Positions 5,049 to 64,000 of a DNA stretch of 64,000 bases are shown one piece after another. Position 1 is the stretch's first letter. Each line of letters begins with the position of its first letter. Under the pieces are notes generated by a model. The model ran no database searches. It saw only the letters and a list, made by a program, of their open reading frames with translations, and had not been told where the DNA came from. The translations under genes were made by a program, and so were the position numbers. Origin of the DNA: Hydrolagus colliei (Eukaryota); contig CM068771.1 in assembly GCA_035084275.1 (NCBI GenBank), positions 496,001 through 560,000 of the forward strand. The letters run 5' to 3'.

Positions 5049-5081
<33 letters not shown>

Positions 5082-37255: not shown

Positions 37256-37280
37256 TAAGTAGAGAGAGGGCGACAGAGAG

Positions 37281-39162: not shown

Positions 39163-40052
39163 CGATCGCGGTGACCATTGTGGTCCTGGCCCAGGGAAAG
39201 TGTGGACTCTCCAAATGTGTCACCCGCTACCTGGTCGCAATGGCTGTTGCTGATCTGCTGGTCATATTCATTGGTGTGATCCTGAGGAAGACATTTCAGC
39301 TCCACCTGCCATACTTTGCTTTGTTCCAGACCCCCATGTGCCGAGTACACATTGTGCTGCGCTTCATCGTCACTGAAGCCTCTGTCTGGCTGACCATGGC
39401 CTTCACCTTTGACCGCTTCATTGCCATCTGCTGCCCAAAGCTCAAAACCAAATACTGCACTGAGAGGACAGCGGGCCTGGTGATCTGGACAATCTATGTA
39501 CTTTTAAGCGCCAAAAATATCCCCATTTATTTTATGTACCAACCGCTGATGGTGATCAATGGGCAGCCCTGGTTCTGCAGCATCAAGCCCATCTGTGGAA
39601 CCGCTATTGGCTGGAGGGTGTTTTCCTTTATTCATATGATTGTAAATCCAATACGTCCCTTCATCGTCATCCTCCTCTTCAACTCTCTGACCATCAGGCA
39701 GGTTCTCGTGGCCAGCGCTGTGCGCCAGCGTCTGCGGGGATCCGTGAAGGGGAGGGACGAGGAGATGGAGAGTCGTCAGAAATCTCTTATCTTGCTCTTT
39801 ACCATCTCGGGGACCTTTGTGTTGCTGTGGCTCACCTACTTGGTCACCTACATGTTTGCAGTGTTGACAAAGGCCAAACTCGATCAGTCTGACTACAGCA
39901 GCCCTTTCACCATCGCTGAGCATGTGGGTTACATACTGCAGTTCCTCAGCTCCTGCTCCAACACCGTCATCTATGGTGTGACCCAGACCCAATTCAGGCA
40001 GAGCCTGAAATCCATCTTCATTTATCCCATCACTCGCTTACTGGGCCACTAA
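39163..40052 (+). CDS. GPR139-like class A GPCR copy A, exon 2 (TM1 end to C-terminus; gene possibly pseudogenised)
   Basis: Acceptor ctgcag|CG; YLVAMAVADLL (TM2), FTFDRFIAICCP (TM3), SNTVIY (TM7); exon is open to TAA. Confidence 0.88.
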
Positions 40053-40258
40053 TATAACCATGTGTAGCTTTTTTGCTCTCTTTGGTCTTGACAACATTAC
40101 ACTTGCGCACAGATCTACGCTATCTTAGAAATTGTACGGTATATCTTTAAAATAATAATTTTTGTATTAAAAATAGCTGTTGGAAAATGCCTGATATTGT
40201 TTCACAAGAGATTTTGTGCAGTTAGATATCTTTCAGTCAACTCGGATCATTGATGTTC

Positions 40259-40264
40259 AATAAA
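40259..40264 (+). terminator. Poly(A) signal of GPCR copy A
   Basis: AATAAA in a block conserved in B (47706-47711), C (63078-63083) and the relic (43607-43612). Confidence 0.65.
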
Positions 40265-40639
40265 ACTAAAGATGTTAAATTAACTGAGGGAAATAAAATT
40301 ACAGAATTGGAAAGAAGAAATAATTGAATTGGATTTGCTATAATAGAATTGGACATGCGATAGTATCTAGATAATTTTGGCTGATCAAACTGAGAAACGT
40401 ACAACAATAATTGGATATGTTTTATGGATCCCAAAATGGACATTGAATAGGATATTTCTCTCCTATCTCTTCTGTAGCATTTGCTTATATTACATAAATC
40501 ATTGTGAACTGTACGTAGATACATAAGGAATACTGTTATGTAATCTGTTAGTTACGAATCACTACTGCTCACATGAATTACTAAATTGTTCCAACTTCGC
40601 AAAACATTTCTGTCAGTCCTTCATTTATCGCGGGACCAC

Positions 40640-41580
40640 AAAAACAACAACATAGTTGCACTTATAGAGCGGCTTTCACGTTGGGAGAATGGGGTGGGGG
40701 GGTGGGGGAGTAGGGGAAGGAGAGTGGGGGAGAGGGAAGAGTTAGTGGGGCAGCCAAAGGCACGGTTGAAGAGGAAGATCTTGAGACCGGCCTTGAAGAA
40801 GGAAAGGGAGGAAGCGAGGCAGAGGGCTGCGGGATGGAGTTCCACAGTGTGGGAGCAGAGAGGTTAAAAGCCCGGCCGCTGATGTTTGGGCAGTTTGGGT
40901 GGTGGACGCGGAGCATGCCTGAGTCTACTGAGCGGAGGCTGCGGTCAGGCTGACAGGGAGACAGTAGGTCAGAGAGATAGGTAAGGGCAAGGCCGTGAAT
41001 GGCCTTGAAAGTGAGGACGAGGATCTTGAATTTGATCCTCTGGGGGATGAGAAGCCAGTGGAGATGGGCAAGGGTGGGAGTGATGTGGGCTCGAAGCCTG
41101 GTACGGGAGCATTCATGAGCTGTAGAATTCTGAGTGATCTGCAGCCTGTGAACAACAACAACAAGATTGCACTTTTATAGCGCCTTTCACGTCGGGAGGA
41201 CATCGCAAAGCACTGTGAAGGGAGGAGCTGGGAAGGCCAATGAGGAAAGAGTTCCCAAAGTCGAGCTTGGAAGTGATAATGGCGTTAATGAGTGTTTTGG
41301 CGGCTTACTGGATGAGGAAGTGGCAGAGTCTGGCAATATGGCAGAGGTGATGGAAGGCTGTGCCGGTCATGGAGCGGATGTGTGGGAGGAAGGATAGTTC
41401 GAGGTCGAAAAAGATGCCCAGATTCCTGATTGGCTTCGACAGGTGGAGAGAGCAGCCTTGAACACTGATGTTGTCAGCGCCTAAGTGGAGGCACTGATGT
41501 GAGCCAATCAGGAGGGCATCTGTCTTGTTGATATAGAGCTGTAAGAAATTTGTCCTCGTCCAGGACTCAACGTCGGACAC
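40640..41580 (-). mobile_element. L2 with a second L2 3' end nested at about 41150
   Basis: SDVESWTRTNFLQLYINKTDALLIG...; two (CAA)n tails; homologous to 45430-46845 in the inverted arm. Confidence 0.8.
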
Positions 41581-41749
41581 AAATCTAAATGAACGCTTAC
41601 AATCGATGCCTGGAACTCCGTCTTGCCCACTTTAACTCCAACCACTCAGACTGACTGACTCCTTATCAACCTGTACACTACCTCTGTAATGCAGGCTTCG
41701 GGTCTGCTCTACATTTCCCAACTGAAACCTCTTTCATCCATGGCCTTGC

Positions 41750-42000
41750 TTCAACAACAACAAAAAAACAACAACAACAATTTCAATTTATATAGCGCCC
41801 TCCGCGCCGGACGGCATCTCAGAGCGCTTCACAATAGCGGATCCTGGGACCGTGCCAGGGGCAGGGCTAGAAAGGTGACCAAAGGCGCAGTCGAAGAGAA
41901 AGGCCTTCAGCTTGGACATGAAACTGAGAAAAGAGGGGTAAGTGAAGGTAGTGAGGAAGGGAATTCCGGAGCCTTGGAGCATAGTGGCTGAAGGCACGGC
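41750..42000 (-). mobile_element. L2 3' end of a different subfamily
   Basis: aacaacaacaatttcaatttatatagcgcc...agagcgcttcacaa; SKLKAFLFDCAF. Confidence 0.65.
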
Positions 42001-42198
42001 CGCTGAGGGTGGAGCAGGTGAAGCTGCAGCCTCTTTGTCCTTTCATTTTGGAAATCCATCCCACAATCCTTTCACCTTGCTCCCTCTCTTATCTCCTTCA
42101 AAGCGGGTTTCAAGAACCTGCTGCTCAACTGCTGCTTCAGTTGTTCTCCTACCTCTCTGCACTTCCTCATTCCAACCCTGTAACATAGTGCTATTCAG

Positions 42199-43403
42199 TA
42201 GGGTCCGCCGATATATCGCTAAAACCCGATATAATTGACAGATCGATTCGCCGATATAGGCATTTCAAAAATATCGATATATCGAGAAATTGGAATGCGC
42301 GCACACTGAACTACAAGACCCAGAATGCTCGTCTCTATACACAATGCACAGATGGAGGTGCAAAGCTGCCATATTGTATTCATAGTCCTCGAATCTATAG
42401 GTATGCAAGGGGTGGGGGGGGGGGGGGGGGGGTGAAGAGAAGGCTATGGCGGGTGTAGGGGCAGAGAGACGGCTTGGGTGTGGGGGTGAGGGGGAGAGAG
42501 ACGGCTGGGGGGGGTGAGGGGGAGAGAGACGGCTGGGGGGGGAGGGAGGAGAGAGAGAGACGGCTGGGGGGGTAGGGGGAAAGAGACGGCTGTGGGGGTC
42601 GGGGGGGAGAGGGACGGCGGGGGGGGGGGGGGAGGAAGAGAGAGACGGCTGGGTGGGGGGGGGGGGGTGGAGTGGTAGAGAGACGGCCTGGGGGGGCGGT
42701 GGGGGTGGAGAGAGACGGCTGTGTGTGGGTGGGTGGGGAGAGAGATAGCTGGGGGGGGGGGATGTAGGAGGGAGAGAGAGACGGCTGGCGGTGGGGGGGG
42801 GGGGAGGGAGAGAAAGTCGGCTGGGTGGGGTGGGGGGGAAGAGAGACGGCCTGGGAGGGGTGGGGGGGGGGGAGAGAGACGGCCTGGGAGGGGTGGGGGG
42901 TGGTGGGGGGAGAGAGACAGCCTGGGAGGGTTGGGGGGGGGGGAGAGAGACGGCTGGGGAGGGTGGGAGGGAGAGAGAGACGGGTGGGGTGGGACGGTGG
43001 GGAGAGAGACGGCGTGGTTGGGGAGAGAGACGACGGTGGGGGGGGAGAGACGGGGTGGATGTGATAATATACAGATAGATAAAGATGGTGGGGATGTGAG
43101 AGAGACACAGAGACACAGACAGAAAAACAGAGAGATGGAGAGAGTGAGAGACACAGAGAGAGATAATTACCTCCTGAGGAGATAGGCCCCGAATGCGCGC
43201 GCACACGGAACGCACGCGCACACTGAGCGCGCGCGCACCCGGGACCGCGCCCACACCCAAATGCGCATGCGCGCGCACTCCGAATGCGCACTATGCACGA
43301 AAAACCCGGAAATATCGAAAGTTCCTCTCTTTTTGAAAATGTTTGTGTTGGCATATCGATACGATAATTGTATCGGATATAATCGATATATCGCCGGACC
43401 CTG
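42199..43403. mobile_element. Non-autonomous DNA transposon (hAT-like TIRs) with internal G-rich minisatellite
   Basis: Left end TAGGGTCCGCCGATATATCG; right end reverse complement CAGGGTCCGGCGATATATCG; repeated CGATAT subterminal motifs; no TSD. Confidence 0.75.
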
Positions 43404-43408
43404 GTGCG

Positions 43409-43424
43409 CCCTAACCCTAACCCT
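43409..43424 (-). repeat. Short interstitial telomeric repeat (CCCTAA)2CCCT
   Basis: ccctaaccctaaccct between the transposon end and the GPCR relic. Confidence 0.75.
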
Positions 43425-43900
43425 GCTCCAACACTGTCATCTATGTTGTGACGCAGACCCAAATCAGGCAGTGCCCAAAATCCATCTTTTTGAAATAATA
43501 AAAGATTTTACATTGAATGTAAAGCTGTTTGAAAATGTCTGGTATCGTTTGACAAGAGATTTTTTGCAGCTAGATATCTGTCACTCAATGCAGACATGTG
43601 ATGTTCAATAAAACTAAATACATCGGAGCTCCTCAGGTTTTATGTGCTGTACACACAAGAAGAAGCCTCTGTAAGATGCTGTAATTAAACTGTTTAATTT
43701 CAGCAGATTACCATCCAATAGGGAATGGGAGGCAGTGGAGCTGGGCGAATGTGGGGCTGTTCGGGTCACTGAGCTTCATGCAGCAAAACATATTAGATGC
43801 AGAATGCAGCATAATCTGCGTCTTGTAGAGACTAGAGTTACAATGACCAATAAGATTGGAGTTGGCACAGGAAAGCCTAATTAGGTCAGAAGGTTGCCAG
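43422..43900 (+). pseudogene. Relic fourth GPR139-like copy (TM7/C-terminus, 3'UTR and downstream flank only)
   Basis: cctgctccaacactgtcatctatgttgtgacgcagacccaaatcaggcag matches SCSNTVIYGVTQTQFRQ; downstream sequence matches the copy C flank (62760-63200) inverted. Confidence 0.8.
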
Positions 43901-45400: not shown

Positions 45401-45429
45401 AATTGATTGTATGTATGTTGGCAAAACAT

Positions 45430-47896: not shown

Positions 47897-48801
47897 CTAC
47901 ACATGGTTATGTTGGTGGCTCAGAAAGCGAGTGATGGGGTAAATGAAGATGGATTTCAGGCTCTGCCTGAATTGGGTCTGGGTCACACCATAGATGACAG
48001 TGTTGGAGCAGGAGCTGAGGAACTGCAGCATGTAACCCACGTGCTCAGCGATGGTGAAAGGGCTGCTGTAGTCAGACTGTAGGAGTTTGGCCTCTGTCAT
48101 CAGTGCACACATGAAGGTAACCATGTAGGTCAACCACAGCAACACAAAGGTCCCCGAGATGGTAATGAGCAGGATTAGAGATTTCTTCCGACTCTCCATC
48201 TCCTCGTCCTTCAACGTCACTGATCCCCGCAGACGCTGACGCACAGCGCTGGCCACGAGAACCTGTCTGATGGTCAGAGAGTTGAAGAGGAGAATGACGA
48301 TGAAGGGAAGAATCGGATTTACAATCATATTCATCAAGTTAAATATCCTCCAGCCAATATCAATATAACAGTTGGGCTTGACGCTGCAAAACCAGGGCTG
48401 CCCATTGATCATCATCAGCGGTTGGTAGATAAAATAAATGGGGATATTTTTTGCGCTTAAAAATGCACAGATTGTCCAGATCACCAGGCCCGCTGTCGTC
48501 TCGGTGCAGTATTTGGGTTTGAGCTTTGGGCGGCAGATGGCAATGAAGCGGTCAAAGGTGAAGGCCATGGTCAGCCAGACAGAAGTATCAATTACGAAGA
48601 AGCGCAGCACAAGGTGTACATGGCACACGGGGGTCTGGAACAAAACAAAGTACGGCAGGTGGAGCTGAAATGTCTTCCTCAGGATCACACCAATGAATAT
48701 GACCAGCAGGTCAGCAACAGCCATAGCGACCAGGTAGCGGGTGACACATTTGGAGAGTCCACACTTTCCCTGGGCCAGGACCACAATGGTCACCGCGATC
48801 G
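47897..48801 (-). CDS. GPR139-like class A GPCR copy B, exon 2 (intact; 322 aa with exon 1)
   Basis: Acceptor ttgctgcag|CG in phase 1; DRF and NTVIY motifs; 64+905 nt = 323 codons. Confidence 0.9.
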
Positions 48802-51085
48802 CTGCAGCAATGTTACAAACACAATCATAGATTTCACTAACTTATTCATGATTGTGCCTGGCAGCAAACCCTTATAAGATTCCATGATTTTGCTGAGTGC
48901 ATATAAGTTCGATCATGTATTTAAAACAGATGCATTTCACAGAGTAGTCAGAGAAAGTTACATAGACATTCACAGCACAGATGGCCATTCAGCCCATTGT
49001 ACCTGTGCCAAATATTCTGTTAAGCGAAATGCCAGTACGTATTGTGGATGTAGAAGCAGTAATTCCACAAATGAATGTCCCAATAAATACCATATATCCA
49101 TTTATCAATAGATTTTTTAGAAGGATTGTTATCTCTGGAAAGAAAGTGACAAATTGACTAACCTTGCACCTGCAATTTATTGCAATGTATAAAGAGCATG
49201 ATGTGTAAGGAAACACAGCGAAGCCATTGCCCTGCACGCAAATCAAACCAGGCAATTTCGCTTCCAAGTGAGCTTTGTATCTATCTTTACTCTCTGTCCA
49301 TCGCTAGATTCCTCTCGGTTTGCTCAGAAATGCCATGACCACAATTCCCTCTGCTTACGCTTTGGATTGTCTCATCGAGCCTCACCCAGTCTGAATGCGT
49401 GTGGGCTGACAATGCCCCACTGATTGCTCATCTCCGAGTCTCGGCTTGAGCGTGTGCCTGCTGGAACTGACCCAACCCTTAACATTATTTATCCTCTCCT
49501 ATTCCATACACTTTCTTGATCGAACTCAAGTCAATGTCTCCTCCAACTTTTGCATCTTCTCAACCCTCCTGTACTCAGAGCAGCCCTATGTTCCTTCCCT
49601 GGAGTCCTGCACTCAACATATTTTGTCAAAGGCTGCTGGCTTTCCATCAGCAGCCACCATGGAAACCCCATCCTCAGTTTCCTCCACTTTCTTCTCTGAC
49701 AGCTCTACCCTCCTGTCCTACTTCTGCTGCTCTGAACTCCTCATAATCTTGGGTGACTTTAACCATAACTATCTTGCATTCAGTCATGCATGACACACTA
49801 GTCGCTGTCAACCTCCACATCACTACTTACTGATATATGTAACCCTGGTATAGGAGACAACTCCACTCCCTCAAATCCCAGGTGCTCTCTGTATACTGTC
49901 CCTTTTCAAACCTTCTTTGTCTGTGCTAATTCATGGACTGTGTTGTTGCTTCCCAACTTTGCCTTTGCTCTCCCAACTTCAGCCCACAACCCCTTCAAAT
50001 TTGGGTTTTGTATTGTTGTAACATAGACTCAGCCCTGGTCAAGGTAAATAAATTAACAATCTGTCGAATTACGACCATGGCATGTCTCTGTCTCAACATC
50101 CTTCTCAACCTGCGAGTTGCTTTCCATAACATTGACCACTATATTTTTCTACACGCACCAATTCTGACCAGTGTCTGCCTGCCTGCGAGACTGACTGCCT
50201 ACCTGCCTAGGAAATTTGGATCACACATGGAAGACCTGGGATTAATTCACGGAAACGCAAATTCTAGGGCAGTTTACTTCATCCACAACCCTGTAATAAT
50301 GTCCCTGGAAGAAACAGAATAGATTGGTCAGTTCAAACCACTAATGGAAGTATTAATGGAAAACTGCTGTGTGCAATTCAATGCCATGTTTTGCCCACCA
50401 TACAAGCAGTGAATTCACTTCACAGTATATATTGTGAAGCACTTCGAGTCATCTAGAAGGCAGCAAAATTGCTTTGACAAATGCAACTATTTGTATTATT
50501 ATTGTATATACCGTCAAACAAATCGATCATCCACTAGTTCTCCAACATATTCAACTTGAAGTCCTTTCCAATTAACAAATTCCCTCTGGATCATTCATTC
50601 TGGTAATGAGTATTATGAGATACAAATAAAAATAGTAGTAATCCTTGCATTCATCAAAATATATCAAAGTGCTTCACATAATACATTGTAAAGTTAATTA
50701 AGTGTGTACTTTCATGGGAAACTCAGCAGCCAATTGATATAGAAGTGACGTATACAAATTTATAGATTGAGTGAAGAAATTCTTTGTGTTTTGTTGTTTT
50801 TCAAGGAAAGATTCTAACCATAAAGCGATTCACCAGTCCAATAACAAATGGGTTTCTTCCAACCGAAGTTCCAAAGAGAGGTGTGAGGAGTGAGGAAAAA
50901 TTCTCAATATTTTGCCTTGACTGGGAATCGAGCCCAGGTCCTCCACTTTCGAGGAGTGCTCTAACCGCAAAGCTACATGACTCAACAACCTGTTTCTGCA
51001 CCACTCATTCTAAATACTCCTTTCTCTGTTTGAAAAGTAATTCAATGTGGAACGTCAGATTACCTCCATTCTCCCTATCTTACCA

Positions 51086-51430
51086 TAATAATAATAATGA
51101 TAATAATCCTTGTATTTTGATATAGTGCTTTTGCACATCTTATCGATGTCCCAAAGCGCTTCACAGAATATACTGTAAAGTGAAGTGACTGTATATTTGT
51201 GGACAAATTGCGGCAACAACTTGCGCGCAGCAGTGTCCCACAAACAGTCATGGATTGAAATGAACAAGTTTATTTTTGTGGGGTTTTTTGCATGGATTAT
51301 TATTAGGCGTGTGGAGGAAGGAAACTTACAAATGGTTTCGTCCTGACCTGCCTGGATTCGAACACGGGTCTCCCCAGCTTGGTCTCCCCAGCTTGCAAGA
51401 CAAGTGCTCTAACCACAGAGCCACTGGAGC
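51086..51430 (-). mobile_element. tRNA-derived SINE in the intron of copy B only
   Basis: Head ggtagctccagtggctctgtggttagagcacttgtcttgcaa...gttcgaatcc; (ATT)n tail; TACCA at 51081-51085 and 51431-51435; empty site in copy A. Confidence 0.85.
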
Positions 51431-51795
51431 TACCACCCAGGGCATTTAAAGAACGTCTGGTCTTATCAATTATGAAATACTATTGCCTCTGTCGGAACAT
51501 CTACTCCGAACTCGGCTGCCAAAGTGCAGCTTTTTGTCTATTTGTCCATTCACAATATCGATTGGTAAATAGAGATATGGTTCCTGAGAGAAGGAGACCA
51601 GAATTGGATATTGCATTTTACGGTATAACTCTAATTGGTGATGTTCCTTTTATGCTGCCATTCACTTTCTTTCGTTTACATGAAACATGTCCTCTTAACA
51701 CTGGGGAACAGAGAAGTTTACTTTCTGAGAACAAGAAGCACCATTGTCGGGTGTAGTGTGGAGCAGTGGCGCACACAGCTCCGTCAACAACATAC

Positions 51796-51859
51796 CAGGA
51801 AAGCCAATGATTCCCAGCGTAGGGTAAAACACCTTCTCTATTTCTATTATTTCCATCAT
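51796..51859 (-). CDS. GPR139-like GPCR copy B, coding exon 1 (MMEIIEIEKVFYPTLGIIGFP)
   Basis: ATG to CCTG|gtatgt, phase 1, matches exon 2. Confidence 0.85.
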
Positions 51860-51943
51860 TGTCAAAGCTGTACTGTATTCTGCTGACACTGTTCTGCAGC
51901 TGAAGAATGTGATCCTGCTCTGAGAACCATTCAGAGCTTCCTC

Positions 51944-51951
51944 TTTTTATA
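51944..51951 (-). promoter_or_regulatory. TATA box of GPCR copy B
   Basis: TATAAAAA at the same spacing as in copy A. Confidence 0.7.
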
Positions 51952-54900
51952 CCTGGGAGTCAGCACTGCAGGGACTGTCATTACGCAACTAATAAATTAT
52001 CCGAACCAACAACTGAGACAAAGAGAATCACGCCATTCTGAACCAAATGTGGTTATGTGGGAAGACTAGAAATAATAATAAATGACATAAAAATAATAGA
52101 TTTTTTTGTGAGAAGCCAACCATCTCTCTCTGGATAACACCATATTATAAAGAGGATGGATGAATGCTGTGACCATTGTTTTAATTAGCTGGGCAACACA
52201 TGCAAATAGGAAATGAGCAATTTGAATGCTGGTCTATCCATTATGTGCAAAGTCAAACTAGTCTGTGAACTGTTTGATACAATATAATGATCATAACTGC
52301 ATTCTTGAAATGCATTTTTTTTAAAAAAAACTTTAATTTCAATCAACTGAAGAGCGAAAACAGAAAGAGTTGTCTGTGCATAACAACCCTTTAACGTCAG
52401 ACTGGTCCCCTAATTCAGAACTGTTGATAAGACGCTGCTGTGAACAATTGGCAGCCACATTTTCCCCTAACAAATATATAGTAAAGTGACTTCACAGTGG
52501 AGTCTGTGAAGTGTTTTGGTGATTGTCATTATGAAGGAGGCCCTCTGGTTTGGCTCCCATAAGCGTCTCCATACATTGGGCAGTGACATATCTCCCTCCT
52601 CCATGGGTAATGATATAGAGCCAATACACAAGCTCAGTGACATGCTGGACCACCAAACTCCATGACCCTATCAACTTCCTATCCTCACCCGATATCGTAA
52701 CGCATTGAATAGTCAGGGCACGGGGACCCGAGCACAGAGGTGTGGGTGATTGGGGGCAGGGTTGGGATGGGGTTGGGCAGAGAGTTAGTGCGAAGGCTTG
52801 TTTCAAGGCCAAGGGGGCAAATGCGGTCAAGAAAGGACGTCAGTTTCTTCATACGGTTGAGCGACACCAGGAGATCAAGGACTCTGAGGAGCTGGTGGAG
52901 ATCAATACGATCTACAATGCAACAGTATCCAGTAGCAAGTTGCATGGCATCAAGATCCAAGTAACATTGGATGGAGTCCAAGTAATCATGGAAGTTGATA
53001 CTGGAGCAGCAGTCAGTGTGGTGTCTGAAACACTGTATTGAGAGAAGCTGAGCAAAAATAAGCTACAATCAGGAAGGGTCGAGCTGCGTAGCTATGGAGG
53101 GGAGATCATCCCAGTTGTGGGTAGACTGTGTGTTCCAGTTACATACAAGGACCAATGTGTGGATTTGCCAATTGTTGTGGTGAAGGGAGAAAAACCAGCA
53201 TTACTTGGTCGAAATTGGATGAACTCGCTGAAATTAGATTGGCAAGAAATCTGTCACGTGCAAATCTCGTTCACAACACAGGAAGAGGTGATAAAGAAGC
53301 ACCCAACGGTGTTCAGTGAATCCAATCAGCGGATACAAAGTGAATGTAGGAGTGTAAGGTGAAGCAAGGCCAATGCACTATAAGCCACGCCCAGTGCCAC
53401 ATGGAATGAGAGAAAATGCAGAAAAAGAACTGAAAATATTTGAAAAAGAGAACTTTATCAGTAAAGTACAACAAAAGTAATTGGGCTACTTCCATTTGTA
53501 GTTCCAAAACCTGTCAGTAGGGTCAAAATCTGTGTGGACTACAAGGTAACGGTGAATCAAGTTCTTGAGTGTAGTCCACCTGACACGTTACCAAATGTAG
53601 AAGATTTATTCAACACATTGGTAGGTGGTAAAACATTTTCTAAAATGGACTTGTCAAATGCCCTATTTACAGTTAGAGTTAGATGAGAAGTCAAAGGCGT
53701 ACATGACTATCAACACTCATATGGGCCCATATCAATACAGTAGGCTACCGTTTGGCGTTACGTCAAGCCCAGGAATTTTCCAAGGGTCATGACTCAGATT
53801 CTAGAGGGAATCAATGAGGTAATATGCTACCTTGATGACATACTCATCTCTGCGCCAAATAGGCAGGTTCATGATGAAAGGCTACACATGGTGTTACAAA
53901 GGCTAGAGAAACACCAAGTATGTGTCAAGGCTCACAAACGTGAGATGTTCAAAGAGTCTGTAGAGTACCAAGGGCATAAGGTAGACAAAGATGGGTTGCA
54001 ACCAACCTAGAGTAAGGTCGATGTGATCAGGATCGTGCCCACTCCCAGAAACACATCTGAGCTACGATCCTTCATGGGATTGTTGAATTACTATGGAAAA
54101 TTCATTCCAAATTTGGGAACCTTTATACTCCCCTTGAATGAGCTTTTGAAGAAAGACATGCCATGGAAATGGACACATGAATGTGACCAGGGTTTCAAGT
54201 TGTGTATAAAACAGCTGGTAGATGGTACAATGCTGGTACACTATGATGTCACAAAGACAATCAAGCCTAGCATAAGACGCCTCCCCACGGGGTTGGTGCG
54301 GTTATCTCTCATGTGTTAGAAACAGTGGAAGAGAGACCGATAGCTTTCACTTCTAGAACCCTGAGTAGTAGTGAGAAAAACTACACCCAAATAGGGAGAG
54401 ACGCTTTGGCCTTGATTTGTGGAGATAGGAGATTCAATAAATACTTGTATGGTCGCAAGTTCATCTTTGAAACAGACCATAAACCTTTGACAGCCATCCT
54501 AAATCCAAAGTCACTCTAGAAGCCAGAATGCAAAGATGGGCGTTGATCTTGTCAGCATACCAGTATGACATACAATATCGTAGGTCAACAGACCATGGTA
54601 ATGCCGATGCAATGTCTAGGTTACCCTTAGCATCATAAGTGAAACCCAACAGGGAAGATGTGTTCTATTTTTCCCAAGTTGAAGAGCTGCCAGTCACATC
54701 AAGTGACATCAGCAAGGCAACTCATAGGGACAGGGTTTTATCCAAGGTGCGTGACCATATTGTCAGTGGGTAGCCGAGTCATATGACTGAGACAGAAGAA
54801 CAAATTAGTTCATACCTTTGTGGGAGACATGAATTGATAAACGACCAAGGATATATCATGTGGGGGGCTAGAGTGGTAATCCCTGAAAGGTACAGAGTAC

Positions 54901-56134
54901 AGTTGTTAGGTGATCTTCACGATCAACACCTAGGGATGTGTCTGACCAAGAGTCTAGCTAGAAGCTACCTATGGTGGCCAGGTTTAGATAAAGACATTGA
55001 AAACACAGTAAAACAGTGTAGTGTATGTTAGTCAGTTGGAAGGAGTCCACTACCAGTACCACTACAGTCATGGAAATGGCCAGCCAGAGTGTGGCAAAGG
55101 TTACACATGGATTTTGCAGATCTAAATGGACAGCAGATGTTCATTGTGATAGATAGTCATTCCAAGTGAGTTGAGGTGTTTCCGATGAACAAAACAACCT
55201 CAAGTAAAACTTTGGATATTTTGAGAGGGTTGTTTGCTTCATATGGATTTCCAGAGGAAATCGTGTCTGACAACGGACCACAGTTCTGTTCAGAAGAGTT
55301 TGTGCAATGCATGAAGAAGAATGGTGTGAAGCACACTAGAGTACCTGCATACCATCCAGCTTCGAATGGTACTGCAGAGCACACAGTGCAAATTGTCAAA
55401 CGCGCACTAGTTAAGCAAATGCTAGATGCAAACCCAAGGAAAAGTCAATTATCATTGCCTCACAAACTAGCCAACTTTCTGATAACGTATCGTAACACAC
55501 CTCACACCACTGCATGCAGAACACTGGCTGAGTTGTTCCTAAAAAGACACCCGAGAACAAGATTTTCATTGTTAAAACCCAACTTAGTACAAACGGAAGG
55601 AAAACAGGAGGGACAGAGAGAGAACCATGATAGAGGTAAAGTGAAAGACAGAAGGCTGGAGTTAACCCAAAAAGTTAAAGTGAAGAACCATTATCACAAA
55701 TGGGTAAAGTGGGTACCAGGAAGAGTAGTGAAAGTATGTGGACCGCTCACCTATTTGGTCAGGATGTGTGAAAGTGGCAAACTCAGATTTGTTCATGTTG
55801 ATCATATCTTACTTACACATGTACTGGAAGAGTGGAGAGAAATGGATAAATCTAATGAACCAAATAGTTTTAGACCAACAAATGAGTAAGTAATGGTAAC
55901 AGAGGACTCAACAAATAAACAGAATTCAACTGTGAATGAAGGTGAGGGTTTAGTTCCAGGTGATAGTCAACAGAACCTGACTGAGAAACTGGAGACTAGG
56001 AGTGAAAGTCAAGAAGAATACCAGACTTGATAGATGGTGAGTCTGAGTGCTACCATGAGTCCTAAAACTTTTGGACAGGGAAGGTATCCTGTTAGAAGTA
56101 GGAAACCAGTAATCAAGTTTGAATTTTGAATTTT

Positions 56135-56245: not shown

Positions 56246-56323
56246 ATAAATTGGATATAGTATCGTGTTTTGAATGTCAGTAATTTAACTTTTTCATAAC
56301 TTCTTCGTTAAGGAGGGAGGAGA

Positions 56324-56446: not shown

Positions 56447-56454
56447 GATAGCAT

Positions 56455-58030
56455 GCTAACTGAAGGCACGGACTAAGAGGAGGTCCTTGAGACAAGCCTT
56501 GAAAGAGGCAAGGGTGGCAGCAACAAGAAGGGATTGTGGGTTGGAGTTCCAAAGTTGCAGAGAGACTGAAAGCCTGGCTGCCCAACACATAGAATGTGTT
56601 GGGCAAGAGACATGGAGCAGGCCGGAGCCTGGTAAACGGAGAAAGTGTACAGATTGTTCAGGGGTGAGTAGTCAGAGAGATAGGAGGGGGCAAGTCCATG
56701 GATGGCTTTGAAAGTGACGACAAGGATCTTAAAGTTGATCCTCAACCAGGGAAGGGTTGAGGTGATGGGGACATGGAGGCTGGTGTGGGAGAGTACATGA
56801 GCTGCAGACGTTTGGATGATCTGCAGCTTGTAGAGGGTAGAGTTGGGAAGACTGACAAAAAGGGAGTCGATGTAGTTGAGCCTAATGGTGACACGTGTAT
56901 GTGTATGCATTTCAGCAAACTGAGAGGAGAGGTAGTGATGGAGAAGGCCGTTATTCTGGAGTTGGTAGAAGATGGTGCTGGTCATGCCATCGTTATGGAG
57001 GAGAAAGGACGTGTCACATTCAAACAAGACAACAACAACAACAAAAACAAAATTACACTTGTACAGCGCCTTTTGCTTCAGAAAAAGTCCCAAGGCTCTG
57101 GACAGTCACTGCTTCTGACCCAAGGTGAGGACGGGGGAAGGAGGGAAAGGGGTGCTAGGAGTTGCCAATGGCTCCTTCAAAGTGTAGAGTCTGAAGCGGG
57201 GTTTGGAGGAGGCCAGGAGGCGGCGAGGTGGAGGGACTGTGGGATGGATTTCCAGAGGTTGAGGATACAATGACTAAAGTTTCACCCGCCAAATGTAGGG
57301 CGAATGGGTAAGGGGACGTGGACCAAGTTGCTGACAGGCTTGATTAGGTGATGTGTGCATCCGTGGATGCTGATGCTGCTGGTAACTGTGGTGCAGAGGC
57401 ACTATCACGTGCCAATCAGGAGGGCCGAGGTTTAGCTCACATTGATCTGTGGAAAGTTTTTTCTCTTCCAGGATTCTATATCCTCGATGCTGAGGAATAC
57501 GGCAAGAGACTGTGCAAGGGCTGGAAGAGAAACCATTGACAGAGACAAAGTGGAGACGGTGTGAAAGGTAGGACCTGAAACATTCTTTGACAAAATTACA
57601 GGCTGAGGTGAGAGGATAGGCAGTTGATGAGGATTGGATTGTCCACTGTGTCAATGGCATGGATGCATTTCAAGATCCTGGTCCTCGCTTTCAACGCCCT
57701 CCACCAAAAGCAACAAAATAATTATAATTATAGAGCGCCAATCAGTTTGTGCGGACATACCAAGGTGCTCCATGCCCTTCCTCCCACCTACCTCCATGAC
57801 CCCATTACAATCTGCCAATGTGTCCATTCATCCACTCAGTAGCTTCCTGCTTCATGTCCAACACCTTGCCTATCACAACATTGGCAGTTGGGCCTTTAGC
57901 TTCTCTGCCCTCAACCTGTAGAAGTCCATCACACAGGATAGTCTTCTCGACTGCTCCCTTATCTCCTTCAAGACACATCTCTTTTTTCATGCATGCCTTT
58001 GGTGATCACCATTCACCTCTGCCATAGTCC
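56455..58030. mobile_element. Mosaic of old L2 fragments in both orientations
   Basis: IRLNYIDSLFVSLPNSTLYKLQIIQTSAAHVL...WLRINFKILVVTFKAIHGLAPSYL; tails at about 57030. Confidence 0.7.
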
Positions 58031-59530: not shown

Positions 59531-59832
59531 TCTTCAACACTTTCTCTTCCATGCACCATTATGTCTCTTACAGTGATCCTCAGGTTTCTGTCTTCAGTCC
59601 ACTCAGATGTTCTCTCTGACTCTGCACTCGACTGCAGAATATATTATGTGCCGACATAATGTCTGAATACATCATTTTTGGATAACAGAGACAATTTTTT
59701 CCAGCTAAATGTCAGCTAGGCTTACACCCTCCTTATTGGGACGCTCCAGCCTTTCAACACCACAGGCATCTCAGAGTCAGAATCCAGAGATACACATTCC
59801 TTCTCACCATGTCAGTCAGGAATCTGAGAATC

Positions 59833-59904
59833 AGCGCCTTGGGACGTCCTCCCGACGTGAAGGGCGGTCTATAAATGTAAATTGTTGTTGTTGTTGTTGT
59901 TGTT
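59833..59904 (+). mobile_element. Minimal 72-bp L2 insertion (3' stem-loop plus tail)
   Basis: agcgccttgggacgtcctcccgacgtgaag...(TTG)n flanked by GAATC at 59828-59832 and 59905-59909. Confidence 0.8.
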
Positions 59905-60194
59905 GAATCTTGTTCAAACCCAAGTGTGCTTCAACTCAATATTAATGATATGGCACACACTGCCCCAAACACCATGCTAACTGCACCGCACAATCCACAA
60001 ACTCTTCTATTTGTATATGTCATCTCAAATATTGACTGCACGTCCCTTTCTGTTGACACTTCCAAATCTTCTTTCTGTAAGTTGCAGATGATATAGAGCT
60101 GCAGCTGATGTCCTCTGGTTTATTATACTGCATACCTCCTCTTGCTTCCAGCAATATTCGCTTCAGAGCTTACTACCTTTCCCAGCCTTCTACT

Positions 60195-60965
60195 ATAATA
60201 ATATTAATAATGATAATGGTAATAATGATAATGATAATGGTAATAATGATAATGATAATGATAATAATGATCCTTAAATTTGAAATAGCACTTTTCAGAT
60301 CTTCTAGACATCTCAGAAAGCCTCACAGGATATATTGCAAGTGAAGTGACTATATTTGTTGCCTAAACATGGCAGCCAATTGCGCTCAGCAGTGTCCAGC
60401 AAACAGTCATGGATTGAATTGACCAATTTCATTGTGCTTTTTTTTGGGAGGGATTATCATTTCCAAATTTGTGCAAGATTATGCAACCAATAACCATGTT
60501 CAAATCATTGCTAATTTAAAAATATCATGTATAAAGTATTGATATAAAGAAATAAGAAGCATCTTAAGAGAATTATCAGAAATGTTGAAGCCATAAAATG
60601 ACCAATAATGTAATGCATTTGATAGTTTTTCTCTCTTTTTTAAAATCATTTCATCTTTAAACAATAATGAATACAATAGTAATCCTTAAATTTGATAATA
60701 CACTTTTCACATCTTCTAGGCATCCCAAGTTATTTCGCAGTTCATATTGTTAACTACAAATTTTGCGCGCGAATCATAGCAGCCAGCAGTTTCTCACAAA
60801 CTGTCATGAATCCATGTATCTAGTTTATTGTTGTTGTTTTTTTCTTCAGGAATTACTAACAGGTATTTAGAGCAAGAAAACTTTCCAAGGAGTTGTCCTG
60901 CTGGAAATTGGCTGAACTTCTCGATTATTAGTTTAAAGCTCTTAACACTGAGCTACAGGACTTCA
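60195..60965 (-). mobile_element. Two degenerate tRNA-SINE copies; the first has an expanded (ATAATG)n tail
   Basis: Tails at 60270 and 60680; head gtcctgtagctcagtgttaagagc at about 60960. Confidence 0.6.
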
Positions 60966-61384
60966 ACCATTGAACTCCCAACAACTGAGGATTCCAACCA
61001 CTGATCTGTAGCTAATTGCAAAGAAAATTTCGATTGAGAAAATATCTTGACAAATAATACGCAATAAATAAATTTCAAGACAATTAGCCAGACATTGAGC
61101 ATATACAAATTAGAAAATTAAACCAATGAACAAAAATGAACTCTAAATTGATATGGTGTGCACGGTGAGTTTCTGAACTCACTATATTGTATGTAACAAA
61201 TGATCGAATAAATATATTGGGGAGACAAAGAGTTACAGAATGTGGTTGTAGACATACTGCATTTTATTGACTGATTGACTGCCCTAAATATTCTTTCTAA
61301 AGTACCATACGAACAGTCATAATACTATTCACTTAATGGTAGTCCCCGAGAGAGATAAAAGATGTAGAGAGGAAGAAAGATAAA

Positions 61385-61640
61385 AACCTGGCAAAACAGG
61401 CCAGCTAGTCTAACGTCAGTGGTAAGGAAATCTGTAGAGACTATCATCCGGAACATGATAAATTTTCACTTGGATAATTATGGGTTAAAACAGCACATCC
61501 AACAGCCATGGGTTTGCTAATGTCAAATTATGTCTAGCAAACAAGATAGAGTTTTATGGATGATGTAGCAGAGACGGTGGATGAAGGTAGAGCAGTTGAT
61601 GTCATTTCTATGGCTTTCCCAAAACGCATTTGATCAAGTG
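61385..61640 (+). mobile_element. Old CR1 RT fragment
   Basis: Degenerate RPxSLTSVVxK...HGF...AVDVI...AFDQVP. Confidence 0.6.
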
Positions 61641-62314
61641 CCTCTTCTACACAACAACTAGAAACAGACAATATTAAATGAAATCAAATGTAAAGATAAT
61701 AGATAAAATTTGGGGTTAATGTATGACCATTAGTTGCTATTGCTCATGTATCATATTATTCTACCCAACTCAATCACCTACCTTCCCTGAAAAAGTATCT
61801 CCAAGTTGCGTTCGAGTCATCTGACTATCTCGGAATCTGGGATTCATCTACAATGATACAAACTCCTCCATCGCTCTCCCCAACAACTCTCTGCTCACTC
61901 CTCACAGTGACTTTTTTCAACACACTCTCCAAACTGCTTGACCTCACTAAAGGTAACATAGTACACCAGCTACCTACTCTCATTCAAAATACAGGCACGT
62001 GCCACCTGGCTCCAATGTAAATTAATGGTAGATCTGGCTGTACATCATCAAAGACACCCACTCCCTTAAATCCTGCTTCAACTCCAACACAATATGGAAT
62101 ACTAAGGACAAGACCAGGATCTTTTACGTTACCATCTAGCTTCCCTGTCTACTCTTTCATGCCTCGCCCACTCGCTAATAAAAACAACCAGAAAGAAATA
62201 ATGATTTCTTGGACACCCAAAACAACGAATAGCTTAACTGCCTTTGCACTTCAAAACACCTAGATTCAAGCCCATTGCGCCCTCACACATGGGGCCGTAT
62301 CCATTCGTCACCAT

Positions 62315-62640
62315 GGAGCTCCTGTGGCTCAGTGGTTAGAGCACTCATCTTACAATTGTAACACCTGTGTTCGAATCCAGGCATCTCAACGCGAAACCTA
62401 AGGCAAGTTTCCTTGCTCCTAATCCCTAATAATACTCCCACCAAAAAAATACAATGTTAAAATTGATCATGTTATTCCACCATTTGTTTAACACTACTGT
62501 GCGCAATTGGTTATTGTGTTTTGCACACAAACACAGTCAATTCACTTTACAGTATTTCTATGCAGCGCTTTAAGACCTCTTCCCAAAGAAGACGTAAAAA
62601 GTACTACAACAAACTCAAGGATTATTATATTATATTATCT
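62315..62640 (+). mobile_element. tRNA-derived SINE
   Basis: A box tggctcagtgg (62325-62335), B box gttcgaatcc (62369-62378), L2-like tail ending (ATT)n. Confidence 0.8.
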
Positions 62641-63299
62641 TCATAGATTAAAATTCCTCTCTCACCAATATTACAACACACATGGAACAACCATCTCCTC
62701 AGTCAACCCCTTCTTATCCGCTGCCATCTAGTCACAAAACAACACGAACATCACCCTGACCAATGCTCTGCTCTAATTAGGCTTCCCTGTGCCAACTCCG
62801 TTCTTATTGGTCATTGTAACTCTCATCTCTGCAAGACGCAGATTATACAGTATTCTGCAATTTGTGTGTTTTGCCACTTGAAGCTCTGTGACCCAATTAG
62901 CTCCAACCTCTCCTGCCTCCACTGCCTCCCATCTCCCACTGGATCTGTTAAATTACAAAACGTTGTTCCCAGGCTTTGGAACGTGCTGTAATTAAAAAGT
63001 TTAATTTCAGCATCCTATGGATCCTTTTTCTTAATTGTACAGTACATAAAACCTCAGATTGCTCAGATGTCTTAAGCTTTATTGAACATCAAAGATCTGC
63101 ATTGAGCGAAAGATATCTAACTTCACAAACTGGTTGTCAAACAATACCAGACATTTTCAAACAGCTTTTTATTCAGTGTAAAAGTTATTGTTTCAAAGAG
63201 ATACCGGGCCATTTAATAACCATCTAAGATAGCGCAGACCTGTGTGTGTGTGTAATGTTGTGTAGACCAACGAGAGCAGCCCAGCTAAACATGGTTGTG

Positions 63300-64000
63300 T
63301 TAATGTCCCTGTAAGCGAGTGATGGGATAAATGAAGATGGATTTCAGTCGCTGCCTGAATTGGGTCTGAGTCACACCATAGATGACGGTGTTGGAGCAGG
63401 AGCTGAGGTACTGCAGCATGTAACCCACGTGCTCAGCGATGGTGAAAGGGCTGCTGTAGTCAAACTGCATCAGTTTGGCCTCTGTGCTCCTTGCATAACA
63501 GAAGGTGACGAAGTAGGTGAGCCACAGCAACACAAATGTCCCCGAGATGGTAAAGAGCAGGATAATGGATTTCTTTCGACTCTCCATCTCCTTGTCCGTC
63601 CCCTTCACTGATCCACGCAGATGCTGACGCACAACGCTGGCCACTAGAACATGCCTGATGGTCAGAGAGTTGAAGAGGAGGATGACGATGAAGGGAAGAA
63701 TCGGATTTACAATCATATGAATAACGTAAAACGCCTTCCAGCCAATAGCAGATCTATAGCTGGGCTTGATGCTGCAGAACCAGGGGTGTCCATTGATCAT
63801 CATCAGCGGTTGGAACATAAAATAAAAGGGGATATTTTTTGCGCTTAAAAATGCACAGATTGTCCAGATCACCAGTCCCGCTATCCTCTCAGTGCAGTAT
63901 TGGGGTTTGAGCTTTGGGCAGCAGATGGCAATGAAGCGGTCAAAGGTGAAGGCCATGGTCAGCCAGACAGAGGTTTCCATGATGACCAGGCGCAGTGGAA
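63300..64000 (-). CDS. GPR139-like class A GPCR copy C, exon 2 (partial; continues beyond the window)
   Basis: Open from the window edge (PLRLVIMETSVW...DRF...NTVIY) to TAA; paralogous to A and B. Confidence 0.88.
   Translation of the reverse strand, partial: PLRLVIMETSVWLTMAFTFDRFIAICCPKLKPQYCTERIAGLVIWTICAFLSAKNIPFYFMFQPLMMINGHPWFCSIKPSYRSAIGWKAFYVIHMIVNPILPFIVILLFNSLTIRHVLVASVVRQHLRGSVKGTDKEMESRKKSIILLFTISGTFVLLWLTYFVTFCYARSTEAKLMQFDYSSPFTIAEHVGYMLQYLSSCSNTVIYGVTQTQFRQRLKSIFIYPITRLQGH

Follow-up and report, generated by a model that had tools for sequence, protein, structure and literature searches.

Three clustered orphan receptor genes of Hydrolagus colliei: extracellular divergence among local copies and pocket selection in shark relatives

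The window analysed in this study (64,000 nt of Hydrolagus colliei DNA) contains three paralogous class A (rhodopsin-type) GPCR genes of two exons each, which form a local cluster and are here called copies A, B and C. They raise the question of whether selection on ligand recognition has driven such copies apart. An earlier note had described them as a positively selected orphan-receptor repertoire, diversifying almost only at ligand-pocket codons and distinct from a redundant GPR139 duplicate. Taken as a whole, this interpretation is partly supported.

Copy A lies on the + strand and copies B and C on the - strand, with A and B placed tail to tail and C upstream of B. The genes follow one plan, in which a TATA promoter precedes a 64-nt exon 1 (encoding a very short N-terminus and half of TM1), and an intron of 3 kb separates this from an exon 2 of 0.9 kb. 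The following features were identified:

35487..36175, + strand: copy A island, running from the promoter through exon 1 into the beginning of intron 1, from the identity profile of the alignment with copy B
35715..35723, + strand: copy A TATA box TATAAAAAG, with the ATG 92 nt downstream
35807..35869, + strand: copy A exon 1, 63 nt, MMEIIEIEKVFYPTL..., frameshifted
35870..39162, + strand: copy A intron (GT...CTGCAG, 3.3 kb), interrupting TM1 directly before N1.50
39163..40052, + strand: copy A exon 2, 295 codons plus TAA, from the second half of TM1 to helix 8 (Pfam 7tm_1, E=1.3e-23)
39336..39380, + strand (A coordinates): variable patch 1, top of TM3, Ballesteros-Weinstein (BW) 3.24-3.38, from the comparison of copies
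39582..39635, + strand: variable patch 2, C-terminal ECL2 and top of TM5 (45.52 to 5.42), the 54 nt singled out in the earlier note
39840..39890, + strand: variable patch 3, top of TM6 and ECL3 (6.52 to ECL3), from the comparison of copies
40259..40264, + strand: AATAAA, ~205 nt past the stop, kept in all three copies
47897..48801, - strand: copy B exon 2 (gene model)
48802..51795, - strand: copy B intron, 3.0 kb (gene model)
51796..51859, - strand: intact exon 1 of copy B (64 nt), MMEIIEIEKVFYPTLGIIGFP and the opening base of the codon that follows (alignment)
51943..51951, - strand: copy B TATA box (alignment with copy A)
63300..64000, - strand: copy C exon 2, partial, spanning TM3 (BW 3.30) to the stop and truncated where the window ends

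Position 39163 is the first base of copy A exon 2, directly after CTGCAG, and the intron placement and gene structure of this copy are matched by Callorhinchus L001 and by the Heterodontus loci. The TATA-to-ATG spacing is -92/-93 in copies A and B and in six of seven Heterodontus paralogues, and -85 in Callorhinchus. Homology between the copies stops just past the AATAAA. The 5' part of copy C, with its exon 1, falls outside the window. Splicing of copy B yields an intact 322-aa receptor, whose stop is located 5 codons downstream of the A and C stop position; its AlphaFold2 model (pLDDT 88.7, pTM 0.85) displays seven TM helices, helix 8 and a beta-hairpin in ECL2. The G-run at 35851-35852 in copy A exon 1 holds one G fewer than in copy B, which causes a frameshift, so that the product, if spliced unchanged, ends after 24 codons. 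This most probably reflects either recent inactivation or a 1-nt assembly error. Copy A is 91-97% identical to copy B within the island and ~80% identical in the remaining intron, a difference that may be due to a conversion tract or to regulatory constraint.

The window genes belong to an uncharacterised family, greatly expanded in cartilaginous fishes, whose label "probable GPR139" is due solely to GPR139 being the nearest named human receptor (E=1.5e-9 for the PDB structure, and the top identity, 22%, among the Foldseek matches). With the other members they share the two-exon structure, the TATA-to-ATG spacing and the arrangement of conserved and variable blocks. GPR139 and GPR142 are orphan class A receptors of vertebrates, with aromatic amino acids and peptides as ligands. 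Neither GPR139 nor the window family has a proline at 7.50. However, NTSR1 scores equally well against the window proteins, and the family, unlike GPR139, pairs C3.25 with C45.50 and has a longer ECL2 that forms a hairpin; it also comprises hundreds of members, whereas GPR139 is essentially single-copy. The identification of A, B and C as GPR139 was rejected, in agreement with the earlier note: they show 22-25% identity to it, carry Y in place of the hallmark R6.51, which is unique to GPR139/142 (PMC8807744), possess the TM3-ECL2 cysteine pair, and coexist with separate GPR139 and GPR142 orthologues in sharks, rays and chimaeras. Against the human GPR139 query, the true orthologues of rays, sharks and Callorhinchus, which are conserved genes, reach 85-86% (GPR139) and about 51-53% (GPR142).

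The family comprises 1294 clusters at 90% identity (E<=1e-10), or 102 at 50% identity (E<=1e-30), and 45 of the best 120 matches are distinct proteins of Heterodontus francisci. The window genes share 71-73% identity with Callorhinchus P0001 and 47-53% with members from elasmobranchs. Their holocephalan branch is small (5 Callorhinchus proteins and at least three genes in the window) and carries I at position 1.50, where N is otherwise invariant (81/82). T6.50 and T7.50, replacing P6.50 and P7.50, are found throughout the family, hundreds of intact shark genes among them. Outside the cartilaginous fishes, the nearest relatives (30-33% identity) are low-copy "probable GPR139" proteins of coelacanth, salamander, bichir and one teleost, that of coelacanth being itself remotely GPR139-like (E=1.8e-18); our searches revealed no large expansion in these groups.

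Every count in the earlier note was reproduced, and the B and C peptides and three TM3 strings that it quoted match the sequence. In variable patch 2 (IKPICGTAIGWRVFSFIH in A), the 15 nt differences between copies A and B fall in 10 codons, each of which changes the amino acid; none is purely silent. TM7/helix 8 (141-150 nt, 39885-40037) shows 4 nt differences, 3 of them silent, and the 92 nt from TATAAAAAG to the ATG show 3. The amino acid changes are clustered (10 of 42 in the densest 18-codon window, permutation p=0.0029), at the tops of TM3, ECL2/TM5 and TM6, and variable residues are more frequent in the extracellular half (38/123) than in the rest (24/172; OR 2.8, p=8e-4). The signalling core, which is strongly conserved, is made up of TM1-TM2, the DRF motif with an ICL2 rich in cysteine, ICL3 together with the cytoplasmic half of TM5, and TM7 together with helix 8. 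The claim that the copies vary almost only at ligand-pocket codons went too far, since 24 of the 62 variable residues (39%) belong to the tail, the intracellular loops or the cytoplasmic halves of the helices. In the extracellular half, positions facing the pocket did not vary more often than the others (11/36 vs 27/87, p=1.0), the pocket sets being derived from BW numbering based on motif anchors and a remote GPR139 alignment that is unreliable in ECL2. Each copy has a different residue at 13 positions. Variation among the three affects homologues of some GPR139 contacts (3.29, 3.33, 3.36, 5.42 (H187) and 6.55), but R3.32, S45.51, E7.35 and Y7.39, pocket positions selected in sharks, are invariant.

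Selection at the pocket is evident in the elasmobranch relatives. Analysis of eight Heterodontus paralogues gave LRT values of 50.8 (M1a/M2a), 55.9 (M7/M8), 51.4 (M8a/M8) and 24.6 (multi-hit), i.e. robust positive selection (p=5e-6 to 7e-13). Recombination among paralogues may inflate such site-model tests; the sole control, a star-tree rerun, returned identical selected sites. Nine of the 12 selected sites belong to a generic pocket set chosen beforehand (p=5e-7) and 6 of 12 are homologous to GPR139 ligand contacts (2.57, 2.61, 3.29, 3.32, 3.33 and 7.39; p=1e-5). Among 85 family proteins, entropy peaks at 2.61, 3.28, 3.29, 3.32, 45.51, 45.52, 6.54 and 7.31, and in the extracellular half it is higher at pocket than at non-pocket positions (2.09 vs 1.60 bits, p=0.0017). 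Thus, diversifying selection in elasmobranch paralogues acts on few sites (6-7%, omega ~4.5), which lie at canonical ligand-pocket positions.

The trio of the window presents a different picture. Its copies have accumulated a dS of 0.13-0.20 since duplication, with a whole-exon omega of 0.57-0.66; omega is 0.9-1.1 in the extracellular half and 0.35-0.38 in the rest, with equal pS in both. The codon models, here and for Heterodontus, were run in our own implementation (with F3x4 and NEB posteriors) in place of codeml or HyPhy. In the trio, M1a assigns omega 0.07-0.08 to 59-61% of sites and omega 1 to ~40%. Hence, about 60% of codons are strongly purified (omega ~0.08) and about 40%, mostly in the extracellular half, are near neutral. 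The near-neutral codons are not specific to pocket-facing helix faces. Positive selection is unnecessary to account for the differences between A, B and C, and the positive selection proposed in the earlier note is supported for the shark relatives, at orthosteric-pocket positions, but not for the copies of the window.

It could still be argued that diversifying selection on ligand-contact residues separated A, B and C and gave each a different ligand. The clustering of changes, the 54 nt without a silent codon, the varying GPR139-contact homologues, the 13 three-way positions and the selection seen in shark members all agree with this, as does the M1a/M2a comparison for the trio without multi-hit rates (LRT 26.1, p=2e-6). 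That signal, however, is a class of 2% of sites at omega 414, and it depends on five codons with 2-3 nt changes (Bpos 82, 86, 167, 168 and 262); with multi-nucleotide substitutions modelled, M2a is no longer favoured in the trio (LRT 3.9, p=0.14), and its point estimate, which comes from four sequences and has low power, places 7.7% of sites in a class at omega 3.5 (top sites 5.39 and 5.40). In the pocket set fixed in advance pN is close to pS (omega 0.8-0.9), not above non-pocket neighbours, the most variable coding windows (0.81 identity) reach only intron-level divergence (~0.80), and the trio conserves those deep pocket sites on which selection acts in sharks. We therefore consider this scenario unlikely. 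Decay of the copies under relaxed constraint, with the variable patches marking where it appears first, would fit the frameshift in A, the extracellular omega of ~1 and the substituted N1.50, P6.50 and P7.50. Against it, the intracellular half is purified in all three lineages and constraint is not looser in copy A than in the other two (nonsynonymous/synonymous counts of 10/7 in A, 12/8 in B and 18/9 in C), exon 2 is free of stops and indels in all three copies, copy B is fully intact, and the threonines at 6.50 and 7.50 are the family norm; such decay is very improbable.

Scarcely credible as a general cause is gene conversion, which would homogenise the conserved parts and leave unconverted patches that merely look variable, i.e. 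concerted evolution in place of selection on the protein. It is favoured by the highly similar 5' island of A and B, by synonymous divergence in exon 2 (pS 0.12) below that of the intron, and by the mosaic of shared-derived states (BC 20, AB 16, AC 12, with AC clustered in ECL2). The earlier note had named such tracts as a possible refutation, but pS is alike in conserved and variable halves (0.108 vs 0.145, 0.141 vs 0.149 and 0.165 vs 0.183, all non-significant) and Sawyer-type run tests, on all sites and on silent sites, revealed no unusually long shared tracts. The preponderance of silent changes in TM7/helix 8 is a mark of purifying selection, not of homogenisation, and the same segments are conserved between species split hundreds of millions of years ago, which is beyond the reach of conversion inside one genome. 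For exon 2, gene conversion is thus largely refuted.

We consider it likely that the locus is a fast-evolving orphan receptor cluster, with near-neutral extracellular drift in the trio and pocket selection in the shark relatives. Judged from its sequences, the family would be a ligand-diversifying receptor repertoire feeding a single intracellular pathway shared by its members. Shark paralogues diversify the deep pocket, most of which the holocephalan branch conserves; this small sub-branch, to which the window genes belong, appears to have kept it (R3.32, E7.35, H7.36, Y7.39) and may have varied the vestibule, i.e. the distal part of ECL2 and the upper ends of TM5 and TM6.

Among known systems, MRGPRs offer a parallel, as an orphan class A family that expanded in one lineage and has the same split between a purified core and fast extracellular parts, although they have no specific sequence relationship to the window family. 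Choi and Lahn reportedly found, in 2003, purifying selection on the transmembrane and cytoplasmic parts of rodent MRGPRs and raised dN/dS in the extracellular parts. Expression of MRGPRs in sensory neurons is established. Odorant receptors and TAARs are likewise large, clustered, fast-evolving class A families, with a hypervariable TM3/TM5/TM6 pocket and a conserved signalling core. Both are very few in sharks (PMC6368271; PMC11979771), so that a niche exists. However, the window genes have neither the OR/TAAR motif set nor close similarity to these receptors, an intron splits their coding region, and their ECL2 hairpin and structural neighbours (mu-opioid, NTSR1, SSTR1) are of the peptide-receptor type.

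Three paralogous receptor genes, here termed copies A, B and C (together, the trio), occupy the right-hand 29 kb of the window. Their 7TM ORFs were recognized from the ORF listing and from matches to the Pfam family 7tm_1 (PF00001), and the features assigned to the three genes are as follows.

39075-40052, + strand: copy A, 7TM ORF (7tm_1, E=1.3e-23)
47897-48793, - strand: copy B, 7TM ORF (7tm_1, E=7.3e-21)
63300-63980, - strand: copy C, 7TM ORF (7tm_1, E=3.2e-17)
35807-35869, + strand: copy A, exon 1, with one G fewer than copy B in the G-run at 35851-35852
51859-51796, - strand: copy B, exon 1 (64 nt; MMEIIEIEKVFYPTLGIIGFP plus one base), with a GT donor at its end
48801-47897, - strand: copy B, exon 2 (905 nt), which, spliced to exon 1, encodes an intact 322-aa protein

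Copies A and B lie tail to tail, with 7.8 kb between them, while copy C, encoded on the strand of B and located 11.4 kb upstream of it, runs past the window end at TM3. Homology between the copies extends from approximately 0.5 kb upstream of the TATA box to just past a conserved AATAAA, located about 205 nt beyond the stop codon. In a three-way alignment, the identity of A and B rose from about 80% to about 100% exactly past CTGCAG (39157-39162), and B carries an in-frame stop just 5' of this point; position 39163, at which the region of the earlier note begins, was therefore taken as the first base of the second exon. Using the N-termini of shark relatives as tblastn queries, exon 1 was located 3 kb upstream in both A and B. 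A single-exon model of copy A, starting from the in-frame ATG at 39132, was rejected, since B has a stop there, identity 5' of CTGCAG is at the intron level, and the conserved exon 1 with its GT donor is also present in Callorhinchus.

The shared gene structure comprises an exon 1 of about 64 nt, an intron (phase 1 in B) that interrupts TM1 immediately 5' of the 1.50 codon, and an exon 2 encoding the remainder of the protein. GPR139 probably has a comparable intron. In the Callorhinchus gene region L001, exon 1 lies 6.9 kb upstream, and in seven Heterodontus loci a 22-codon exon 1 is followed by an intron of 2-10 kb; one Heterodontus locus contained a single gene in 25 kb. The NCBI model of the Callorhinchus protein P0001 starts inside the intron-exon 2 boundary and omits the conserved exon 1. 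The L001 intron also carries a fragment resembling receptor residues 53-111 (51% identity), which is probably a pseudo-exon. These two observations concern L001 3016-3090 and 7932-8102. At 47897-47914 the TAA stop of A and C is replaced in B by CAA, so that B is 5 residues longer; its tail (…SHQHNHV) agrees with that of Callorhinchus (…GHSHNHV).

As assembled, the spliced product of copy A ends after 24 codons. Lineage-specific nonsynonymous/synonymous counts were alike (A 10/7, B 12/8, C 18/9), which shows that A, despite its frameshift, has evolved no more freely than B and C. The frameshift is either recent or an assembly error.

The best relatives of the trio are Callorhinchus milii proteins (71-73% identity; E=4e-138 to P0001), followed by hundreds of shark, ray and sawshark proteins (47-53% identity), nearly all automatically named 'probable G-protein coupled receptor 139'. 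E values of about 1e-83 to 1e-122 were obtained for more than 100 elasmobranch proteins. This chondrichthyan expansion, referred to below as the family, amounted to 1294 clusters at 90% identity with E<=1e-10, and an exhaustive HMMER scan of 50%-identity representatives gave 102 clusters with E<=1e-30. Distinct proteins of Heterodontus francisci accounted for 45 of the best 120 matches. Each elasmobranch genome carries dozens of paralogues, often on the same chromosomes; only about five were found in Callorhinchus, and three are present here in 29 kb. The next relatives, with 30-33% identity, come from salamanders, coelacanth, bichirs and a teleost, in which these genes are low-copy. Literature searches returned no description of this expansion, and a catshark sensory-organ study covered only four classical olfactory receptor families. 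The expansion is apparently undescribed, and its genes are represented only by automatically generated models called 'probable GPR139', some of which are truncated.

Several lines of evidence indicate that the GPR139 label of the family is a best-hit name only. The window genes share only 22-25% identity with human GPR139. True GPR139 orthologues (85-86% identity) were detected in Hypanus and Mustelus with the human GPR139 core as the query, and GPR142 orthologues in Callorhinchus, Carcharodon, Hemitrygon and Leucoraja (51-53% to the GPR139 query in Callorhinchus, Carcharodon and Leucoraja). R6.51, described as unique to GPR139 and GPR142 and required for activation (PMC8807744), is replaced by Y in A, B and C. 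The same Y occurs in 54 of 85 family members, and R is not among the three commonest residues. Unlike the aligned GPR139 sequence, the window genes also possess the canonical C3.25-C45.50 pair. The view of the earlier note that these genes are not redundant GPR139 duplicates was therefore borne out.

The AF2 model of B (pLDDT 88.7, pTM 0.85) displayed seven helices, an ECL2 beta-hairpin and helix 8, with Foldseek TM-scores of 0.7-0.75 against class A receptors. Its closest structural neighbours were peptide receptors, e.g. mu-opioid, NTSR1 and SSTR1, and GPR139 ranked 23rd (22% identity); against solved structures, NTSR1 (6.5e-10) and GPR139 (1.5e-9) scored alike. The trio retains the signature residues D2.50, DRF, P5.50, W6.48, N7.49/Y7.53 and C3.25 with C45.50, as well as, tentatively and in the holocephalan copies only, W4.50. 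Replacements were found at N1.50 (I, in all holocephalan copies and only in these; N in 81 of 82 elasmobranch members), P6.50 (T) and P7.50 (T). The change at 7.50 is invariant family-wide, and position 6.50 is variable, with T in 40 of 85 members and P replaced by T or V. The peculiarities of the family alignment lie at residues 23, 93, 176, 179, 246 and 289 (numbered on the B product) and include, besides the replacements just given, a near-universal acidic residue at 3.37. Most elasmobranch members have D at both 5.39 and 5.42, where the window copies carry S/N/Y and H/N/H instead; the acidic residues hint at cationic ligands in the shark members.

Ballesteros-Weinstein numbers were assigned by motif anchors on B (D2.50=52, C3.25=81, R3.50=106, C45.50=160, P5.50=187, W6.48=244, N7.49=288). 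Two pocket sets were chosen ahead of inspecting the differences, namely a generic class A set of 37 positions, which follows published pocket definitions, and the GPR139 ligand contacts. The latter were taken from PMC8807744 and carried over via HMMER alignment; the sets thus rest on motif-anchored numbering and a remote alignment to GPR139.

The counts on which the earlier note had built its case were all reproduced. Between A and B, the segment 39582-39635 (IKPICGTAIGWRVFSFIH) differs at 15 nt in 10 codons, each of them amino-acid-changing, the TM7/helix 8 region has 4 differences (3 silent) over 141-150 nt, and the TATA-to-ATG stretch has 3 differences in 92 nt. The clustering exceeds chance, as 10 of 42 amino-acid differences fall in the densest 18-codon window (permutation p=0.0029), and the extracellular half is enriched for variable residues (38/123 vs 24/172, OR 2.8, p=8e-4). 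However, the assertion that the paralogues diversify almost only at ligand-pocket codons does not hold, since ICL2, ICL3, the tail and the cytoplasmic halves of the helices account for 24 of the 62 variable residues. Nor does the extracellular half show an excess of variation at pocket-facing over other positions (11/36 vs 27/87, p=1.0).

Analysis of substitution rates in exon 2 (Nei-Gojobori) gave omega values of 0.57 for A-B (dS 0.133, dN 0.076), 0.66 for A-C (dS 0.160, dN 0.106) and 0.62 for B-C (dS 0.195, dN 0.121). By region, omega reached 0.9-1.1 in the extracellular half vs 0.35-0.38 in the rest. For the pre-set pocket positions, pN was 0.10-0.14 against a gene-wide pS of 0.12-0.17, i.e. 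a ratio not above 1, and it was no higher than at non-pocket neighbours (pN 0.11-0.19). The identity of A and B is 0.75-0.88 in introns and 0.81 in the most variable coding window (39567-39666), whose divergence is at the neutral level, not past it.

Codon models, in our own implementation with NEB posteriors, were applied to A, B, C and the Callorhinchus gene (four holocephalan sequences). The plain models gave an M0 omega of 0.44 and a significant M1a/M2a comparison (LRT 26.1, p=2e-6). We rejected this value as evidence of positive selection, since the extra M2a class (2% of sites, omega 414) arises from codons with 2-3 nucleotide changes (residues 82, 86, 167, 168 and 262 of B). With double and triple substitutions allowed, the comparison for the same four sequences, which has little power, became non-significant (LRT 3.9, p=0.14). 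M1a is adequate for this set, assigning omega 0.08 to about 60% of codons and omega 1 to about 40%. A run of amino-acid-changing codons between recent paralogues is, alone, no evidence of adaptive evolution; here, such a run equals the neutral divergence seen in introns, and multi-nucleotide codons were the source of the apparent site-model signal. We consider what is seen in the window to be ordinary divergence of paralogues within an interesting family.

Gene conversion homogenizing only the conserved parts, which the earlier note had named as a process that could generate its pattern, was tested in exon 2 and was not supported. Synonymous divergence of the conserved vs variable halves was 0.108 vs 0.145, 0.141 vs 0.149 and 0.165 vs 0.183 (all non-significant), and silent differences persist in the conserved stretches, which are also shared by chimaeras and sharks at the protein level. 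No long shared tracts emerged from Sawyer-type run tests, either with all sites or with silent sites (lowest p=0.022 among many tests). A separate island of 91-97% identity between A and B (35487-36175 vs 51500-52200) covers the promoter together with exon 1 and the initial 300 nt of intron 1, and over the rest of the intron identity is about 80%. Of this island, only the coding part of exon 1 is recognizably conserved in Callorhinchus. The island represents either a conversion tract or regulatory constraint.

The picture is different in the wider family. Over 85 full-length relatives, entropy peaked at 2.61, 3.28, 3.29, 3.32, 45.51, 45.52, 6.54 and 7.31, and within the extracellular half it was higher at pocket than at non-pocket positions (2.09 vs 1.60 bits, p=0.0017). 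Eight H. francisci paralogue genes, 75-84% identical to one another, have conserved and variable blocks as in the window genes and an M0 omega of 0.61. Positive selection was favoured in every comparison, i.e. M1a/M2a (LRT 50.8, p=9e-12), M7/M8 (LRT 55.9, p=7e-13), M8a/M8 (LRT 51.4, p=4e-13) and M1a/M2a with multi-hit rates (LRT 24.6, p=5e-6). The selected class comprised 6.6% of sites with omega 4.9 under M2a, and 5.8% with omega 4.3 under the multi-hit model. A star tree, the only control applied for recombination among paralogues, recovered the same sites. The 12 selected sites are 2.57, 2.61, 3.29, 3.32, 3.33, residue 146 of B, 45.49, 45.51, 45.52, one ECL3 site, 7.35 and 7.39; nine belong to the generic pocket set (p=5e-7) and six are homologous to GPR139 ligand contacts (p=1e-5).

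Given these tests and the pocket placement of the sites, the idea of a positively selected, pocket-diversifying orphan repertoire holds for the family; in the trio with Callorhinchus, positive selection did not reach significance. The shark-selected positions are mostly fixed in the trio (R3.32, F45.49, S45.51, E7.35, Y7.39), and among the five Callorhinchus paralogues the only ones that differ in more than one copy are 2.57, 2.61 and 3.32. Variation in the holocephalan branch, which is small, is concentrated in the distal part of ECL2 and at the top of TM5 and of TM6.

The receptors, encoded by two-exon genes with a TATA promoter, combine an extracellular N-terminus of only a few residues (in the AF2 model, TM1 begins at residue 4) and a disulfide-stapled hairpin ECL2 with an invariant intracellular surface, made up of DRF, the cysteine-rich ICL2, an ICL3 with basic and acidic residues, and helix 8. 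All members probably signal via one common partner, the outward cavity being free to change and, in sharks, driven to do so. The family would therefore sample a variety of ligands, either small or peptidic.

Sharks and their relatives are noted for chemical sensing. Their OR, TAAR and V1R genes are nevertheless very few, and V2Rs number about 30-35 (PMC6368271, PMC11979771), so that a large class A family with more than 100 50%-identity clusters is an obvious candidate for the missing ligand-recognition repertoire. In this family the signalling core is conserved, and positive selection on the residues of the pocket can be demonstrated. It is conceivable, although in our estimation rather unlikely, that it constitutes a large class A repertoire of cartilaginous fishes for chemosensation in olfactory, gustatory or barrier tissue, which has so far escaped description and fills the OR/TAAR gap, with shark pockets diversifying under positive selection and a conserved TATA promoter with EBF (O/E)-like sites driving cell-type-specific expression.

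As regards the promoters, TATAAAAAG is located 92 nt before the ATG of copy B. TATAAA stands at -92/-93 relative to the ATG in A, in B and in 6 of the 7 Heterodontus genes, and at -85 in the Callorhinchus gene. TCCC-type motifs, whose likeness was judged by eye only, precede TATAAA. Holocephalan and shark promoters could not be aligned in register by MAFFT, and motif correspondence is based on manual anchoring at the TATA box. In two Heterodontus paralogues the EBF/O-E consensus TCCCCGGGGA occurs 22 nt before the TATA box, with degenerate versions in others; this sequence or near-matches are found in the Heterodontus loci L002 (9887-9896), L003 (187-196) and, at the same place, L006-L009, with TATAAA exactly 92 nt before the ATG. 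A second TCCCACAGGG adjoins the TATA box in the Heterodontus promoters, and A, B and Callorhinchus have GTCCC….GAG and TCCCAGG/C at the corresponding places. The consensus is not rare; it had 5 matches in nine loci and stood at -114 in only two paralogous promoters, and the window contains no exact match to TCCCNNGGGA, with about 2 expected by chance. We regard the putative EBF-like sites as a weak lead only.

Between B and C, an ORF at 55176-55886 (+) that encodes an integrase core of the retroviral type (Pfam rve, E=1.6e-9), followed up by an integrase C-terminal domain match, is an LTR-retrotransposon remnant. Three ORFs, at 823-1752 (-), 34357-35175 (+; just upstream of the copy A promoter) and 56473-57093 (-), share the block …LRNYLTPRAAETLVH.YITSRLDYGNS…LQ.IQNSAARVL… and probably represent one repeated element, a LINE tail. 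The GC-rich (54%) segment 42265-43462 (-) between A and B, with overlapping proline/serine-rich ORFs, is probably a low-complexity repeat and not a gene. Neither the LINE-like nor the proline-rich ORFs of the window had a Pfam match. CT-rich and GT-rich low-complexity DNA occupies 4300-10000 and 31100-33900 and is broken up by six N runs of 131-200 bases. A 20.5-kb satellite array (10229-30715), built of about 787 copies of the purine-rich 26-bp unit AGAGAGAGAGTGTGGAGGGGGAGAGC with 85% matches, ends at an N gap and is the source of giant spurious ORFs.
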